Shown here piece by piece: positions 488-62,577 of a stretch of 64,000 nt of DNA. The stretch covers positions 248,001 to 312,000 of the IMG/VR virus record IMGVR_UViG_3300042558_004148, one strand, 5' to 3'. The notes beneath the pieces are model-generated. The model saw nothing but the letters and a program-made list of their open reading frames with translations, made no database searches and was not told where the DNA came from. The position numbers and the translations under genes are program-made. Every line of letters starts with the position of its first letter. Position 1 is the stretch's first letter.

Positions 488-803
488 TAAGGTTGTTGAA
501 TTCACGAACAGATATGGAACTGTTCTTGAATTCAAAAGAACTTCAATCTCTGAATTTTTGGTGTCTAATATACCAAATTTTTTCGCCAGAAGATCCATGA
601 CTGAATCGGGTGAAACGGTAATGTATGATCCATCAGGTGGTCCTTATATAGGAGCTGAGATAGATGGGCATCCTGGTACAGATATGGGATATTATGACAA
701 AGCATGGAAGGGGCTGATAGTTAATAATATAGAAATCCTGGAAGGTGATCAAATAATACTAAGATGCCACGGAGGTCCGGTGGAATGGGATCAGATTAAA
801 TAA
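471..803 (+). CDS. hypothetical protein
   Basis: 110 aa ORF coupled to the upstream gene. Confidence 0.6.
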   Translation: MDIDINKVVEFTNRYGTVLEFKRTSISEFLVSNIPNFFARRSMTESGETVMYDPSGGPYIGAEIDGHPGTDMGYYDKAWKGLIVNNIEILEGDQIILRCHGGPVEWDQIK

Positions 804-1404
804 GAGGTAACTTGTTTTTGAATGATTTATATCTGTCAATAATTTTATCAAATTCATCAGATTCTAGATTGATGGAGGAAAGGAATAATTCTTTCTCTTC
901 CTTCTTCAATATAGGATAGATCATAAGGAAATTATCAATATCACCTTTATAAGCTGATACTAGGTATTCGCCAAGTTTATCCTTGGGTACTCTGTCGAAA
1001 TGACCAAGATCTATGCTTTTATACCTCTTATATCTCTTCTTAGCCCATGATAGAATGTAGAGAAATCTTGAATTCCAATCATTTAGATTTTGTATTGGTG
1101 CATCGAATTCTTTTAATATATGAGGATTACCCTTATTGATTCCCCTCACGTTTCTATAAAAACTTGCGGTAGACTTTCTTATTGGTCCATTCTGATATAT
1201 CGTGATAGCTGTGTCCGGTGCATCCATATCAAGCTCGTTGTTATATAATCTCATGTTACCATGACTCCATATTGCATTGGTAGTGGAATCAGTAAACCCT
1301 AATGTTTCCAATACCTTAAAAGTAGGAAGAGCCTTAACATCATCAATTGTATATGAATAATTAGCAGATTCAAATAGATCGGAGAATTTTAGAAGATTTA
1401 TCAC
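796..1404 (-). CDS. hypothetical protein with CTS-like N-terminus (INLLKFSDLFES)
   Basis: GATATATAGA motif upstream; N-terminal peptide family. Confidence 0.65.
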   Translation of the reverse strand: MINLLKFSDLFESANYSYTIDDVKALPTFKVLETLGFTDSTTNAIWSHGNMRLYNNELDMDAPDTAITIYQNGPIRKSTASFYRNVRGINKGNPHILKEFDAPIQNLNDWNSRFLYILSWAKKRYKRYKSIDLGHFDRVPKDKLGEYLVSAYKGDIDNFLMIYPILKKEEKELFLSSINLESDEFDKIIDRYKSFKNKLPLI

Positions 1405-1482
1405 TATTAGCTTATATTTAATTTAATCTATATATCATTTTTTATACCCGTAACATTTTAATACATTTACAAAAAATCAAAT

Positions 1483-2232
1483 ATGAATAAGATATTAGAA
1501 TCTTTAAGACCTTTCTGCTCTGTTAAAAATGCAGGACCAGCATACCTAAATGGAGCTGAGCCAACACCAAGAGTTAGATTTATCATTGATCTTTTAGATG
1601 AGATGAAAATACCTTATGAAATTGACAGCTTCCTGTTCAATGATATAAATCTATATAATGTGATATTGAGAGGAACCAGCAAAAGAATGGTGGTAGCACA
1701 TCATGATATAGTTAATCCAGATTCTGAGAATGCGAATGACAATTCAGCATCAGTCCTTAATGCGATATATTTAAAATCGATACTTCCTGAGATCAATGTA
1801 GTTCTGACAGATGCCGAGGAGGTTGGTCTTAGAGGTGCATCACATTTGGCAGAACAAATATTGGCTGGAGAATTTGGAGAAATTGAATGGGTATTAAATT
1901 TGGAATTAAGTGGAGCTGGCGGTAAGAATTTTATGATAGGATCACATAAGGGTAAACTTACAGACAGGATTGTCGAGATGTTTAATGCACCAGTAGTTCA
2001 AACTCCTCCTAGCGATTCTTATGCATTTGAAAGATATGGCATAGATACCAATGTAATAAACCCATTATCGCTATTGAATGAAGGAGAATCTAGTATATTG
2101 AGTGAGTCAGGATATTTAGATAACTCATCATGGTGGTTGTGTCATACCATGGAGGACACTGCGGATAAGTTATCAACAAAAGATATGTATGATTTTGTCA
2201 ACGAGGTTCTTGTACCCATAGTTTCGGAATAA
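1483..2232 (+). CDS. M28-family Zn peptidase
   Basis: AHHD, ANDNSASV, DAEEVG, LELSG and terminal CHT motifs. Confidence 0.8.
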   Translation: MNKILESLRPFCSVKNAGPAYLNGAEPTPRVRFIIDLLDEMKIPYEIDSFLFNDINLYNVILRGTSKRMVVAHHDIVNPDSENANDNSASVLNAIYLKSILPEINVVLTDAEEVGLRGASHLAEQILAGEFGEIEWVLNLELSGAGGKNFMIGSHKGKLTDRIVEMFNAPVVQTPPSDSYAFERYGIDTNVINPLSLLNEGESSILSESGYLDNSSWWLCHTMEDTADKLSTKDMYDFVNEVLVPIVSE

Positions 2233-59195: not shown

Positions 59196-59349
59196 GTACA
59201 GCACTACTACAACACCACAACCAAGCTCAGATACATTGAGAGACGGGATGATCAGATGATGTTCCGTCACTCAGTTATCTGTTACACTTAGCATCAAAGC
59301 CAGTCCAAGTCCTTTATAAGGGGCTATATAAAAAACTCCTTATATTACC

Positions 59350-59766
59350 ATGATCAAGACAAAGACATTTTCGTTACTAGCATTCAACAGATTTGAATTC
59401 GGTACACAACCCATATCACAATTCGTGATCTTCGAACACAAGTCACTATTCTCCATCATCATCTTCTACTTCCATAAGTCAGATGGAGCACAGGACAGAT
59501 TTCACACTCATGCATTCAATGCCATCTCATTTAAGTTGTGGGGTTCCTACACTGAGCACATCTTAGACAACGAGGAGACTGGTGAATGGCATGCTTCTGA
59601 GAGGACTTCGTTTATCAAAAGATTTCCAAGAGACTCCTACCATCGTATAGCTAGTAGTAAGGGCTGTTGTACTGTACTCTTCTCTGGTTCATGGAGGAAA
59701 ACATGGAAGGAGTATATTAATGGTCGTATACAGCATTATAACTGGGGCAGAGACGAAGAGGTCTAA
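59350..59766 (+). CDS. cupin-fold protein
   Basis: FHTHAFNAIS...YTEH...SYHRI. Confidence 0.6.
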   Translation: MIKTKTFSLLAFNRFEFGTQPISQFVIFEHKSLFSIIIFYFHKSDGAQDRFHTHAFNAISFKLWGSYTEHILDNEETGEWHASERTSFIKRFPRDSYHRIASSKGCCTVLFSGSWRKTWKEYINGRIQHYNWGRDEEV

Positions 59767-60184
59767 TACTACTCTTACTCTACTACTCTATAGGTACTCT
59801 ATCTACTCTGGTGGCCGGCCCTCTTTGAAATCCGTACATAAACCCCCAACATGATTCGGGCTCGGCCCACTGGGGGACCAGTGAAATAAAAGACCCCGGG
59901 GGATGCAGACCCAAAACTGAGGGGGCCCAACCCGCGCTTTAGCCTTGGTGGAATGAAGAAAGCAAGGAGGCAGAGAGAGTTATAAACAACATCAACAGAG
60001 TGATATATAGTGCATGATATTAACATACACCCAATACATAACGGAGAAAGCCAAAAGAGACAGCAATCCATGCTGGCCTGGTTACACACAACTTGGCACC
60101 AAAATCAAGAACGGCAAGACCGTGCCCAATTGTGTTGATGTTGATGACAAGAAAACACAGAACCAAAAACAGAAATAGGATATT

Positions 60185-62577
60185 ATGAAATACATTACAC
60201 CATTTGACGCGGACACCAACTTTGATAACCGTCTGGATGAATCATCACAGAAGATGATGCCGATCGCTAGATACTATAAGAAAGCAGGAGCTAAGATTCA
60301 AAAAGTTTCCAAAGAGATTGATGAGCTTATTAACGATGCTAAATTTAAAAACGTTGAGGACAAATACAGATTGCTTGATCTAATCACGAATTTGGTTGAT
60401 GTGCATTTAGAAGAGGTTAAAAAATAATAGGGATCACGATGAAAAACCTAGCACCATATAATCTATTCGAAGATGACAAGCCACCAGTTAAGAGTGAAAG
60501 AAAGCTTCTTGGATTTGCACTAAGTACTATTGCTAGCTATGATCAGGGTGATGCTATTTCATCATATCTTGTTGTTGGAAGCGCATACACATTTCAGGAA
60601 TTTGCATTTCAAGTTCTAGAGGATCTACATGGGATGGAACCAGAGGACATCAGTGATGCAATAAAGGACATTGAAGATGTTGATGATGAGGTTTATAATA
60701 CAGCTGAACCTTCTAGCTACGAATCAATGTTCTGGCATGGACTTGAACCAGTTTCAAATGAGGCATTCTATGACTCAATAAGTTTGACAAATCCTGTAAT
60801 GGCATCACAGCTGCTTAGAAAGTACTTCAGTAATGCTGATGTGATAATGTCAAGAGACCGAAATGGTAACAATAATGACAACACTTACATAATCAAATCT
60901 ATTAAAAATTCACCCGAGCTTCTATTTAGATATGAAAATGATGGTGCAAGATACAATGATATAATATCAAATCTTGGATTTACTGAGGATCAAATTAGAT
61001 CACTCAAAAGTTATTCGCAAATTAAAAATCAATTATAATGGATAAGATAAAGAGCTATTCAGAATTTAACTCTGAATTAAATGAGGCAGATCTTGGTATA
61101 TTTAAAACCATGCCTGTTTTTGCTAGAGCAATAGCAAACCCATTCTCGCTAAGTATAGCACCACAGATCGTTACGATGATGGATGGTGACATAAACGACG
61201 AAGCTTCAATAATGGAGCCTTATAAAAAGATCTTTCAAAAAGCATGCATCAAGTTTGGAGGGGGTAAACCAGGAAATGTTGGTAAAACATGTAACAAAGA
61301 TCTCACACTACAAGCACTTGCTGAATTTTATTTCGATCCTGCTAAAGGTAAAATGGATCCTAAAGCTATATCTAAATGGCTGGATGAAACTACAAAAGAT
61401 CACGATCCTTCGGCAGAAGGTGAATGGGAAGTTACTGCTGCTGATATGGATGAGATCGTTATGAAGTTTGTAGATCTTCTTAAAAGAACAGGTGTTACAC
61501 CAGGTGGTATTAAAAAGACAGGGACATATCTTCTAAATATTGGTCTTCCTATGATGAAGAGATTCTATAAGCCGGAGGACATAGAGAAAATGAAGATGAT
61601 AACAAGCGGACAGTTAATAGATGCTGCTAAAGCTAAAGAACTTCTTGCTGGTGGAGCAAAAGGGGGAGAATTATCTCTGGATTAAGAATATATAGATTAT
61701 AAAAATATAAAAAAATATGAACAATAAACACATTAAATTATTCGAAGCTTATGTCTCTGAAACTAGCGACATTATAAATGAAGCTTATGATGATATGATG
61801 GCTAACCATGCTGATGGTGATTTTAATATCGATGAAGACACTATGACTTATGACTTATCAGAAGATGACGAGGATATGGATTGGCTGGATGACGAAGAAT
61901 TAGGAAGTGGAGAAAAAGCAGCACTTGCTAGGGATTTTCAAATTCTAACTAAACCACAATTAGCAGCACTTTACCTAAGGGCATTAGGAAAAGCTCAGGA
62001 AAATGATCCAGGTAAATATTTGGTAATGGTTGATGGTATCGATCAGTTCGGTGAATATGATGATGACAGCAGAGCATTTAAAGTTAGTACTGCAGCTCTT
62101 GGTGATGCCATTGGACTTGATTCAATCAGAACAGTTGGACGTACAGTTAACAAATTTGTTAATCTAATTAATGGTACTGGTGAAACTTCTTCTGAGACAA
62201 TCTACCCTAAATTACTTAGAGCATACGAATTTTTCCAAAATAAACCGGTTTCTCAAGTAGCTAATTTGGCATCTGAAGCAGTTCAGGATCCTACAGTTTC
62301 TACTAAACACAGAGAGGAAGCTATTGCAGCAGGACCTAGAGCAGCAGCTCAAAGAGCAGCTCAAAAGAAAATGCAATTGGAAGTTGGATCTAAAGTTTTT
62401 GCTCTTATTAATTCACTAAGAAGAAACGAAATCTTCAGAGACATCACTAAAGCTCATAGAGCGGCAGTTAATAAGATGGCAGCTGAAACTGGATTAACAG
62501 CAGAGAGAATTAATCTTGCTTATAGAACATTCTTAACAGATAAAGGAATTATGTCAGGTGCTAATTACGCTATGTAA
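60185..62577 (+). other. four CTS-like N-terminus proteins (60185-60427, 60439-61038, 61038-61685, 61717-62577)
   Basis: MKYITPF, MKNLAPYNLFE, MDKIKSYSEFNSELNEA, MNNKHIKLFEAY; GATATATAG/GAATATATAG upstream. Confidence 0.7.

Follow-up and report, generated by a model that had tools for sequence, protein, structure and literature searches.

The 64,000-nucleotide stretch analysed here (hereafter the window; IMG/VR record IMGVR_UViG_3300042558_004148, positions 248,001 to 312,000) is part of the complete 373,467-bp genome of an uncultured lake-water jumbo phage (99.997% identical; hereafter G001). A first-pass annotation of the window, made from the letters alone, had listed 19 otherwise unrelated open reading frames (ORFs) sharing an N-terminal MKHIKLFE-type peptide. 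All 19 ORFs exist at the coordinates below and start as described. To quantify the resemblance, we built a 12-column position matrix and iterated it on the complete genome. Seventeen of the 19 ORFs scored 11.6-28.3 bits and clearly begin M-K-x-[IL]-K-x-[FY]-x-x-[FY]-[ILV]-x-E, whereas ORF 14858 is borderline and ORF 796 is weak. One further candidate, at 24263, was retrieved by the matrix but looks doubtful. The features are as follows, 'box' denoting an upstream ATATATA box and 'core' the second half of the peptide.

796..1404 (-): weak or possible tagged gene (202 aa, GTG start, MINLLKFSDLFE); -0.2 bits, out of register; box at 1429-1435, 24 nt before the start; LFE ends at residue 12; no Pfam or PHROG hit.
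14858..15214 (-): borderline tagged gene (118 aa, MQYIKDYPSLNINE); 9.6 bits; box at 15232-15238, 17 nt upstream; INE ends at residue 14.
15860..16333 (+): tagged gene (157 aa, MKHLTVYESY); 19.2 bits; box at 15849-15855, ending 4 nt before the ATG; the orthologue in the relative G002 keeps the tag.
16382..16741 (-): tagged gene (119 aa, MENIKIYSDFVNE); 20.1 bits; box at 16761-16767; full core YSDFVNE.
16871..17929 (-): tagged gene (352 aa, MKNLRTFRLFE); 19.2 bits; box at 17934-17940, ending 4 nt before the ATG; no family, PHROG or Atlas hit.
19037..19543 (-): tagged gene (168 aa from the internal ATG, MKYIKSFSSHINE); 22.0 bits; no box of its own, lying directly downstream of 19548-19799 on the same strand.
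19548..19799 (-): tagged gene (83 aa, MKHIRLFEDF); 21.6 bits; box at 19821-19827.
24263..24490 (+): extra, doubtful candidate absent from the first-pass list (75 aa, MKNLANVEVFHIE); 16.8 bits, but no aromatic residue at position 7 and no box.
28284..28856 (-): tagged gene (190 aa, MKHIKLFEAF); 27.5 bits; box at 28881-28887; a contig from a related phage in a public run skips 28200-28880, which is exactly this gene.
28892..29293 (-): tagged gene (133 aa, MKHIELFEKFISE) with a weak RNA 2'-phosphotransferase/ART-like match (phrog_5470, E 1.9e-4); 23.0 bits; box at 29298-29304, ending 4 nt before the ATG; full core FEKFISE.
30371..31150 (+): tagged gene (259 aa, MKHIKLFEEH), DUF5661, the Pfam match starting at residue 22; 25.1 bits; box at 30360-30366, ending 4 nt before the ATG; the G002 orthologue keeps the tag.
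31958..32575 (+): tagged gene (205 aa from the internal ATG, MKTIKTFESF); 19.0 bits; phrog_5162, unknown function, E 2e-32, from residue 12.
39360..40181 (-): tagged CHAP peptidase (273 aa, MEKLKSFSEFLAE); 21.9 bits; box at 40199-40205; Pfam CHAP at residues 62-157.
40840..41667 (-): tagged SLT transglycosylase (275 aa, MGKIKSFNEYINE); 18.7 bits; box at 41696-41702; Pfam SLT at residues 175-256; full core FNEYINE.
50667..50984 (+): tagged gene (105 aa, MKHLKIFEGY); 21.1 bits; box at 50640-50646.
53792..54103 (+): tagged gene (103 aa, MKHLQLYESF); 28.3 bits; no box within 70 nt; the G002 orthologue keeps the tag.
60185..60427 (+): weaker tagged gene (80 aa, MKYITPFDAD); 11.6 bits; first of a run of four tagged genes on one strand.
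60439..61038 (+): tagged gene (199 aa, MKNLAPYNLFE); 16.4 bits.
61038..61685 (+): tagged gene (215 aa, MDKIKSYSEFNSE); 19.1 bits; scores 19.7 against the scaffold-repeat core described below.
61717..62577 (+): tagged gene (286 aa, MNNKHIKLFEAYVSE); 26.2 bits; box at 61688-61694; full core FEAYVSE.

The observation made in the first-pass annotation is thus confirmed, although the window showed only half of the set. In the complete genome, 43 of 517 N-termini pass a threshold that only 0.5% of internal-Met windows reach, where about 3 would be expected. At 10 bits or more, 42 of 517 pass, or 40 once two obvious false hits are removed. The 61%-identity relative G002 has 32 of 379, whereas the T4-type phages used as controls, PTm1 and T4, have 1 of 301 and 1 of 263, respectively. 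An untrained regular expression gave a consistent picture, matching 5.0% of G001 N-termini against 0.18% of internal Met sites, and 1.0% and 0.4% in the two controls.

The tagged proteins are indeed otherwise unrelated. After removal of the first 22 residues, only one pair among 40 proteins (the two SLT proteins) matched by BLASTP at 1e-3. The set includes CHAP, two SLT, Amidase_2, PG_binding_1, OmpA-like, RimK-type ATP-grasp and adenylate-kinase proteins, and Pfam domains start after the tag (CHAP at residue 62, DUF5661 at 22, adenylate kinase at 27, amidase at 19, ATP-grasp at about 23, SLT at 154 and 175). In the AF2 model of the CHAP protein, residues 1-10 have low confidence (pLDDT 57) and the folded domain starts at about residue 21. 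A single diverged paralogous family, of which only the N-terminus would still be recognizable, therefore seems very unlikely: local paralogue runs do exist, such as five consecutive MKHIKLFEDYSDEEL genes on one IMG/VR contig and the four neighbouring tagged genes at 60185-62577, but the bodies belong to different Pfam families with unrelated folds and show no pairwise similarity apart from the SLT pair, and in adenylate kinase the tag is a 22-residue addition in front of a complete standard domain.

Codons at the conserved positions vary synonymously (CAT/CAC, ATT/ATA/ATC, TTA/CTA/CTT/CTC, TTT/TTC, GAA/GAG), so that this is not a repeated DNA cassette and selection acts on the peptide rather than on the DNA. 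Likewise, most of the 27 G002 orthologues keep the tag, and among the 409 homologues found for the CHAP protein, an alignment of 51 shows M1, F7, F10 and E13 to be invariant or nearly so. These data also bear on whether the conservation could reflect an mRNA-level signal, an A/U-rich 5' coding stretch being needed for translation initiation and the peptide being a by-product. In favour of this reading, no Shine-Dalgarno-like sequence lies upstream of these genes, some of which look leaderless, the box ends exactly 4 nt before the ATG in 13 genes, and the consensus peptide is made almost entirely of A/T-rich codons. However, synonymous third positions vary freely whereas the amino-acid order and conservative replacements (I/L, F/Y, K/R) are kept, and the published huge phage LR756500 encodes the same architecture, as MKYIKEYEEF[IV]xE, with different codons and residues. 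Moreover, highly expressed late genes such as those for the capsid protein, sheath and protease have the box but not the peptide, and composition alone would not fix the order F7-x-x-F10-[ILV]-x-E13. We thus regard this possibility as improbable.

The tagged genes are strongly associated with the GATATATA box that also precedes the tail sheath and protease genes. An ATATATA box is found upstream of the tail sheath, protease, tape-measure-like and head-closure genes, and it precedes 25 of 42 tagged genes against 54 of 475 others (odds ratio 11.5, p 4e-12). The remaining 17 tagged genes lack it within 60 nt, some of them lying inside runs of tagged genes. That this box is a late promoter is inferred from the genes it precedes and not from transcript data. 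The complete genome further encodes a T4-type head: a gp23-like capsid protein, a gp21-family S77 head maturation protease (Peptidase_S77) whose GELDHP and ISSRAAGS motifs align to T4 gp21, and a gp55-like late sigma factor. Three genes just downstream of the capsid gene also start with tag-like peptides. By contrast, the cleavage site of the capsid protein could not be aligned reliably with the T4 site.

The strongest clue lies outside the window and could not have been seen in the first-pass annotation: the protease is fused to 13 tandem repeats of YSEYLAENLDKNIS. The core of this repeat has the same register, [FY]xx[FY][ILV]xE, as the second half of the tag and as the T4 capsid-targeting sequence (CTS), MKTYQEFIAE (PMC8442874). 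A profile of the repeat core ranks ipII and ipIII, which carry this CTS, first among all T4 N-termini (24.3), and in G001 it ranks the CHAP tag (24.6) second, just behind the tagged 67-aa protein at 59351 (25.0). The strict core [FYW]xx[FYW][ILVM]xE occurs 44 times in the proteome, 12 times in the protease and 12 times within the first 12 residues of proteins, where 2.4 are expected. However, only about 12 tags carry the full core, many others (MKHIKLFEEH..., MKHLKIFEGY...) having only the first half, with a possible L-F-E site at residue 8. An [ILV]xE with its Glu at residues 7-20 was found in 32/40 tagged against 116/475 untagged proteins, a comparison that is partly circular because the matrix rewards Glu at positions 8 and 13.

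The association is not restricted to this genome. The exact MKHIKLFE coding pattern occurs in more than 120 IMG/VR stretches, with the consensus continuation QF[IV]NE, the records being large or fragments of large genomes. S77 was found in 22 of 50 of them, and in 3 of 3 that are at least 90% complete, always in a 504-787-aa frame, and all 18 protease genes fetched carry 6-15 such repeats. The tag and the repeat-bearing protease thus co-occur across many IMG/VR jumbo-phage contigs, as well as in LR756500, which has a protease with four core motifs next to its capsid gene and 10 genes starting MKYIKEYE.

We consider it probable, with moderate confidence, that the shared peptide is a cleavable capsid-targeting propeptide of the T4 type, used on a much larger scale by a clade of freshwater and other environmental jumbo phages to load several dozen different proteins into the prohead. 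In this view, tagged genes would be transcribed late, together with the head genes, from a GATATATA promoter read by the gp55-like sigma factor. The 13 N-terminal residues, M-K-x-I-K-x-[FY]-x-x-[FY]-[ILV]-x-E, would form a short amphipathic segment whose second half copies the core (YSEYLAE) of the 14-residue repeat making up the scaffold-like C-terminal half of the protease, and through this likeness the cargo would join the scaffolding core while the gp23-like shell closes around it. The S77 protease would then cut after the Glu of [ILV]-x-E, dismantling the repeats and removing the tag, and leaving in the head, probably for ejection with the DNA, the cell-wall enzymes (CHAP, SLT and OmpA-like), other enzymes and many unknowns. 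Our analysis establishes the motif and its enrichment, the selection at the protein level, the T4-type head genes, the association with the box, the register shared by repeat, tag and T4 CTS, and the co-occurrence across the clade, whereas late timing, scaffold binding, cleavage, packaging and injection are inferred from sequence and by analogy, without proteomic, structural or genetic evidence.

The interpretation given in the first-pass annotation, which proposed a portable address tag close to the T4 CTS on a large set of head-packaged, injected proteins (CHAP, SLT, annexin-like and ART-like), is therefore partly supported. Every computational test that we could run agrees with a portable, T4-CTS-like N-terminal tag lying outside the folded domains, and the scan of the full genome for the peptide, proposed there as a check, extended the set to about forty proteins. 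CHAP and SLT are confirmed by Pfam, but 'ART-like' rests only on the weak phosphotransferase match at 28892, and our searches found no support for 'annexin-like'. Presence in virions, cleavage after Glu and injection remain inference.

Several features fit this model less well. Some cargo, namely adenylate kinase and the ATP-grasp ligase, is unexpected for a capsid, the tagged proteins are not basic (median pI 5.7), unlike the T4 internal proteins, and PTm1, a cultured relative with an S77-plus-repeat protease, has no tag set. Two alternatives are possible, although we consider both unlikely. First, the peptide could be a removable propeptide or assembly tag for something other than the head interior, either a latency peptide keeping wall-degrading enzymes inactive until a phage protease cuts it, or an address for the tail, baseplate or another late assembly. 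Indeed, several tagged proteins are peptidoglycan enzymes or binders (CHAP, two SLT, Amidase_2, PG_binding_1 and OmpA), which in many phages sit in the tail tip or act as lysins, and the association with the putative late box fits any virion part. However, the match to the scaffold repeat, to the head-specific CTS of T4 and to the gp21-type cleavage motif points to the head, genes next to the capsid gene carry the tag, a prohead protease is expected to act inside the prohead (PMC5694885), and adenylate kinase and the ATP-grasp enzyme have no obvious need for latency.

Second, and about as doubtful, the peptide could act in the infected cell and not in the particle, as a timing or degradation signal, a docking site for a phage chaperone or compartment, or an unconventional export signal for the wall enzymes. 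The ordinary intracellular appearance of adenylate kinase and the RimK-like ATP-grasp protein, the 17 tagged genes without a box and the fact that packaging is only inferred are consistent with this view. Yet the peptide is hydrophilic and amphipathic, not a signal peptide, and this reading explains neither why the protease-scaffold repeats share its core, nor its resemblance to the T4 CTS, nor the enrichment of the structural-gene box.

Among described systems, the CTS of T4 internal proteins IPII and IPIII, cleaved by the prohead protease gp21 (PMC8442874, PMC5694885), is the closest. Both are short N-terminal peptides that start with MK on otherwise unrelated proteins and share the register aromatic(-6), aromatic(-3), I/L(-2), Glu(0), T4 having MKT-YQEFIAE where the tag ends in FSEFLAE, FEKFISE or FNEYINE, and both phages encode an S77 protease and a gp23-type capsid protein. 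The present tag is nevertheless three residues longer, with an I-K-x insert, and has about 40 carriers per genome, against two T4 genes (ipII, ipIII) starting with the exact MKTYQEFIAE, gp61.1 starting with the related MKTFKEFIKE. In addition, the cargo here includes enzymes, the protease is fused to a repeat scaffold whereas T4 has separate gp21 and gp22, and packaging and cleavage, proven in T4, are only inferred here.

In the phiKZ-like giant phages (phiKZ, 201phi2-1, SPN3US), many different proteins are, as proposed here, packed into the head, with N-terminal propeptides removed after Glu, at S/A/G-x-E, and thought to act like a CTS (PMC5694885). These propeptides are, however, mostly long (over 100 residues) and are not one shared short peptide, and the protease belongs to family S80, not S77. 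That lineage has its own RNA polymerases, and its capsid proteins did not appear among the matches to the capsid protein of this phage. A maturation protease combined with the scaffold in one gene product, as fused or nested proteins, exists in other tailed phages, such as P2 (gpO) and lambda (C/Nu3). Here, the scaffold-like half consists of 6-15 tandem 14-residue repeats, each ending in a potential cleavage site, and its core recurs as the tag on cargo proteins, an arrangement of which our literature search found no description.

Finally, the closest capsid proteins are those of the Lak megaphages and other huge phages (Al-Shayeb et al. 2020) and of the cultured Bacteroidota phages PTm1 and MaF61, with 46% identity to LR756500, about 44% to Lak, and 31-32% to MaF61 and PTm1. 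Lak-A2, PTm1 and T4 gave no match to the tag pattern, the PTm1 protease has a different repeat, and the papers on these phages that we searched do not mention a capsid-targeting peptide. Enrichment of TAnnTTTG upstream of genes suggests a Bacteroidota host.

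The 64-kb window lies in a 125,864-bp IMG/VR fragment (hereafter G000) rated 54% complete by CheckV. A gene from the window led to a complete record of 373,467 bp with direct terminal repeats (G001), which was tiled and found to be 99.997% identical to the fragment over 125,858 bases. A relative at about 61% protein identity (G002, 289,651 bp) was tiled as well. The fragment ends inside a short-period tandem repeat (G000 125572-125864, corresponding to G001 about 29828-30200), which probably explains the assembly break. The DNA comes from lake-water metagenomes and has a GC content of 36%. 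Megablast and tblastn searches found no close cultured phage, and the closest capsid proteins belong to the huge phage LR756500 (46%), Lak megaphages (about 44%), Flavobacterium phage MaF61 and Tenacibaculum phage PTm1 (31-32%). The motif TAnnTTTG, the Bacteroidota -7 promoter motif, occurs within 80 nt upstream of 58 genes of G001, about twice the expected number, and TATTTGC is among the enriched upstream words, which fits host-type (Bacteroidota) promoters for early genes. However, TAnnTTTG is not significantly depleted upstream of tagged genes (3/42 versus 55/475), so that it does not separate early from late genes. The phage is therefore an uncultured jumbo myovirus, probably of Bacteroidota.

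The first-pass annotation had listed 19 ORFs sharing an N-terminal peptide, and this observation is confirmed, since all 19 start as described there. With a 12-column matrix, 17 of them score 11.6-28.3 bits, whereas the ORF at 14858 scores 9.6 bits and the ORF at 796, which has a GTG start, scores -0.2 bits; one further weak candidate lies at 24263. In the complete genome, 42 of 517 N-termini score above 10 bits, and 43 pass a threshold that 0.5% of internal-Met windows reach, where about 3 are expected. G002 has 32 of 379, whereas the control T4-type phages PTm1 and T4 have one each, and an untrained regular expression gives the same picture. The peptide, of about 13 residues, is thus found at N-termini only. 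After removal of the first 22 residues, only one pair among 40 tagged proteins is alike by BLASTP, and third codon positions vary freely, indicating a peptide under selection and not a DNA repeat. Given this synonymous variation, the different codons used in LR756500 and the unrelated folds described below, the readings of the peptide as an mRNA-level signal or as the remnant of a paralogous family are the weakest of the rival explanations.

Pfam domains were found in the following tagged proteins, always behind the peptide:
In the window: CHAP (residues 62-157).
In the window: SLT (residues 175-256).
In the window: DUF5661 (from residue 22).
Elsewhere in the genome: a second SLT.
Elsewhere in the genome: Amidase_2.
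Elsewhere in the genome: PG_binding_1.
Elsewhere in the genome: an OmpA-like domain.
Elsewhere in the genome: a RimK-type ATP-grasp.
Elsewhere in the genome: an adenylate kinase, whose standard domain begins at residue 27 behind the tag.

One further protein has a weak RNA 2'-phosphotransferase (ART-superfamily) match. Most tagged proteins were left without annotation by Pfam and PHROGs, and Atlas searches for two unknown cargo proteins gave nothing usable. Among 51 CHAP homologues from metagenomes, M1, F7, F10 and E13 are invariant or nearly so. In the AlphaFold model of the CHAP protein, residues 1-10 have a pLDDT of 57 and the confident fold starts near residue 21. The peptide is thus an add-on in front of complete domains. 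Some of the cargo (adenylate kinase, ATP-grasp) is unexpected for a capsid and the cargo is not basic; an address for another virion part, a latency peptide and an intracellular signal are the other rival readings.

Tagged genes are not more variable between G001 and G002 than other genes (27/42 versus 220/475 have orthologues), and most of the 27 G002 orthologues keep the tag; the picture of a hypervariable internal-protein locus known from the T-even phages is not reproduced at this distance. A contig of a 90-95%-identical relative in a public run joins window positions 28199 and 28881 with 27 other letters in between (region 28200-28880). It therefore lacks exactly the tagged gene 28284-28856, from just past its stop codon up to its promoter box, which suggests cassette-like gain or loss of cargo genes.

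The head machinery of G001 is of the T4 type. The genome encodes a Peptidase_S77 annotated as a head maturation protease, which aligns with T4 gp21 and keeps the GELDHP and ISSRAAGS motifs that hold the catalytic His and Ser in gp21. It also encodes a capsid protein homologous to T4 gp23 along its whole length, a large terminase, a tail sheath and a gp55-like late sigma factor. The protease and the capsid protein lie outside the window, and both are absent from G000 apart from a diverged gp23-like paralogue. This second gene (G000 25179-26081 (+), G001 129892-130413 region, just outside the window; 300 aa; Pfam Gp23 E 8e-12; PHROG ‘major head protein’) lies far from the head module, among glucosyltransferase-like and nucleotide-metabolism genes, and G002 has one too.

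The most enriched upstream word is an (G)ATATATA box, which precedes the sheath, protease, tape-measure-like and head-closure genes. We read this element (GATATATA) as the late promoter, by inference from the genes that it precedes. It is found upstream of 25 of 42 tagged genes against 54 of 475 others (odds ratio 11.5, p 4e-12), leaving 17 tagged genes without it, and in the window many tagged genes run antisense to their neighbours, each behind its own box. The public RNA-labelled runs that hold this phage or its relatives are stored as assembled contigs, some of them probably DNA, and gave no transcript starts, transcript ends or timing. In 13 genes of G001 the box ends exactly 4 nt before the ATG (for example GATATATAGAAC-ATG), including the following positions in the window:
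15849-15862
17927-17940
29291-29304
30360-30373

If the box is a -10-like late promoter element, the mRNAs of these 13 genes would be leaderless or nearly so. A second spacing class lies 17-30 nt upstream, with A/T-rich leaders, and no Shine-Dalgarno sequence is visible upstream of the tagged genes.

The strongest clue came from the protease gene itself (G001 320026-321996 (-), 656 aa, outside the window), which is a fusion: residues 20-310 are the protease, whereas residues of about 292-476 are 13 tandem copies of the 14-residue repeat YSEYLAENLDKNIS. Counting back from the Glu, the repeat core has aromatic(-6), aromatic(-3), L/I/V(-2) and Glu(0). The second half of the tag has the same register (FSEFLAE, FEKFISE, FNEYINE, YSDFVNE), and so does the T4 capsid-targeting sequence (CTS), MKT-YQEFIAE (PMC8442874), of ipII and ipIII. 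A BLOSUM-averaged profile of the seven-residue repeat core ranks ipII and ipIII first among all T4 N-termini, at 24.3, although the tag matrix does not pick out the T4 internal proteins and peptides this short, even with a shared register and MK start, cannot establish homology. In G001 the same profile ranks the CHAP tag (24.6) second, just behind the tagged 67-aa protein at 59351 (25.0). A strict frequency matrix of the repeat was too specific and matched only 2 N-termini.

The strict core occurs 44 times in the proteome, of which 12 are in the protease and 12 lie within the first 12 residues of proteins, where 2.4 are expected; only about 12 tags have the full core. An [ILV]xE with its Glu at residues 7-20, the motif expected for prohead-protease cleavage, was found in 32/40 tagged against 116/475 untagged proteins, with peaks at residues 8 and 13, although this comparison is partly circular with the scoring matrix. 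The three genes downstream of the capsid gene start with tag-like peptides, and G002 has the same protease-repeat fusion. The T4 scaffold gp22 contains KEWLAEN, and gp23 is cut after FGSFLTE, which has the same register; however, BLASTP alignment of the capsid propeptide with T4 gp23 does not place the T4 site on a candidate site here. The T4 hypothetical protein gp61.1 (NC_000866 18966-19130, 54 aa) begins MKTFKEFIKE, close to the CTS of ipII and ipIII. The highest [LIV]xE density in G001 is found in ORFs made of EPQELM-type peptide repeats at the ends of the genome (ORFs at about 1-706 and 372031-373452).

A degenerate DNA pattern for MKHIKLFE found more than 120 IMG/VR stretches, a lower bound. 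Of 104 matches, 99 open ORFs of at least 50 aa, the usual continuation being QF[IV]NE. The 50 records checked are large genomes or fragments of them: 47 are rated 8-81% complete at 30-236 kb, and three are 92-100% complete at 246-482 kb. S77 was found in 22 of the 50, including all 3 that are at least 90% complete, always in a 504-787-aa frame, and all 18 protease genes fetched carry 6-15 Y[ST]x[YH][LIV]AE repeats. The published huge phage LR756500 has a protease with four such cores next to its capsid gene and ten genes that start MKYIKEYEEF[IV]xE, whereas PTm1, T4 and Lak-A2 have none. A search for covariation between repeat and tag gave no signal, as PTm1 has the same fused architecture with a different repeat (WIKxDFTKELSEG) but no matching tags, and IMG/VR contigs whose repeats have His in place of Tyr carry the same tags. 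Searches of the literature for the peptides, or for a capsid-targeting sequence in huge phages, found nothing.

These results are best read as a T4-style capsid-targeting propeptide used on a much larger scale. The interpretation in the first-pass annotation, that of a T4-like address tag on head-packaged cargo, is partly supported: well supported computationally, it remains unproven. T4 biology supports this frame, as internal proteins join the core through a CTS, gp21 then removes the CTS, and foreign proteins fused to the CTS are packaged (PMC5694885; PMC3012670). In the present phage, the peptide, its enrichment, its shared register and its association with the box and with the repeat-bearing protease come directly from the sequence analysis, whereas late expression, binding to the scaffold, cleavage, presence in virions and packaging are inferred. 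Beyond T4, what is new is the fusion of the protease to repeats whose core recurs in the tag, which offers a mechanistic clue. We propose that the tag works by copying the scaffold repeat, and that the fused protease would remove it by the same cuts that dismantle the scaffold. Co-folding of the CHAP tag (residues 1-50) with the repeat region of the protease (residues 285-485) returned a score of 0.00 with a partner pLDDT of 32, which is not evidence either way.

A more far-reaching version of this proposal, which is not excluded but remains tentative, is that the tag is a single copy of the scaffold's own repeat unit. In this view, the 6-15 tandem YSEYLAE-type repeats fused to the head protease in this clade of huge phages would build the scaffolding core, and any protein acquiring one such unit at its N-terminus would be co-assembled into the core and released by the cuts that dismantle it. 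Capsid loading would then be an open system that can be extended by gene fusion, through which about 8% of the genes (wall enzymes, nucleotide enzymes and dozens of unknowns, possibly anti-defence factors) would be delivered with the DNA. It would also suggest that T4's own CTS came from a scaffold-derived peptide.

Huge phages are known almost only from metagenomes, and most of their genes have no assigned function. If this peptide is a capsid address, it would assign, from sequence alone, a location and a time of action (inside the particle, delivered at infection) to about 40 genes per genome across a widespread clade. It would also provide a list of candidate early-acting effectors, a simple rule for how cargo is recruited (by copying the scaffold repeat) and a natural, short, portable packaging tag for very large capsids, as the T4 CTS already provides for T4 engineering. 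The question of what huge phages inject besides DNA would thereby become directly testable.

Finally, an auxiliary gene set was found outside the window, at G000 9294-21042, comprising a nicotinamide phosphoribosyltransferase, a ribose-phosphate pyrophosphokinase, a Thg1-like tRNA-His guanylyltransferase and a homing-endonuclease-like gene.
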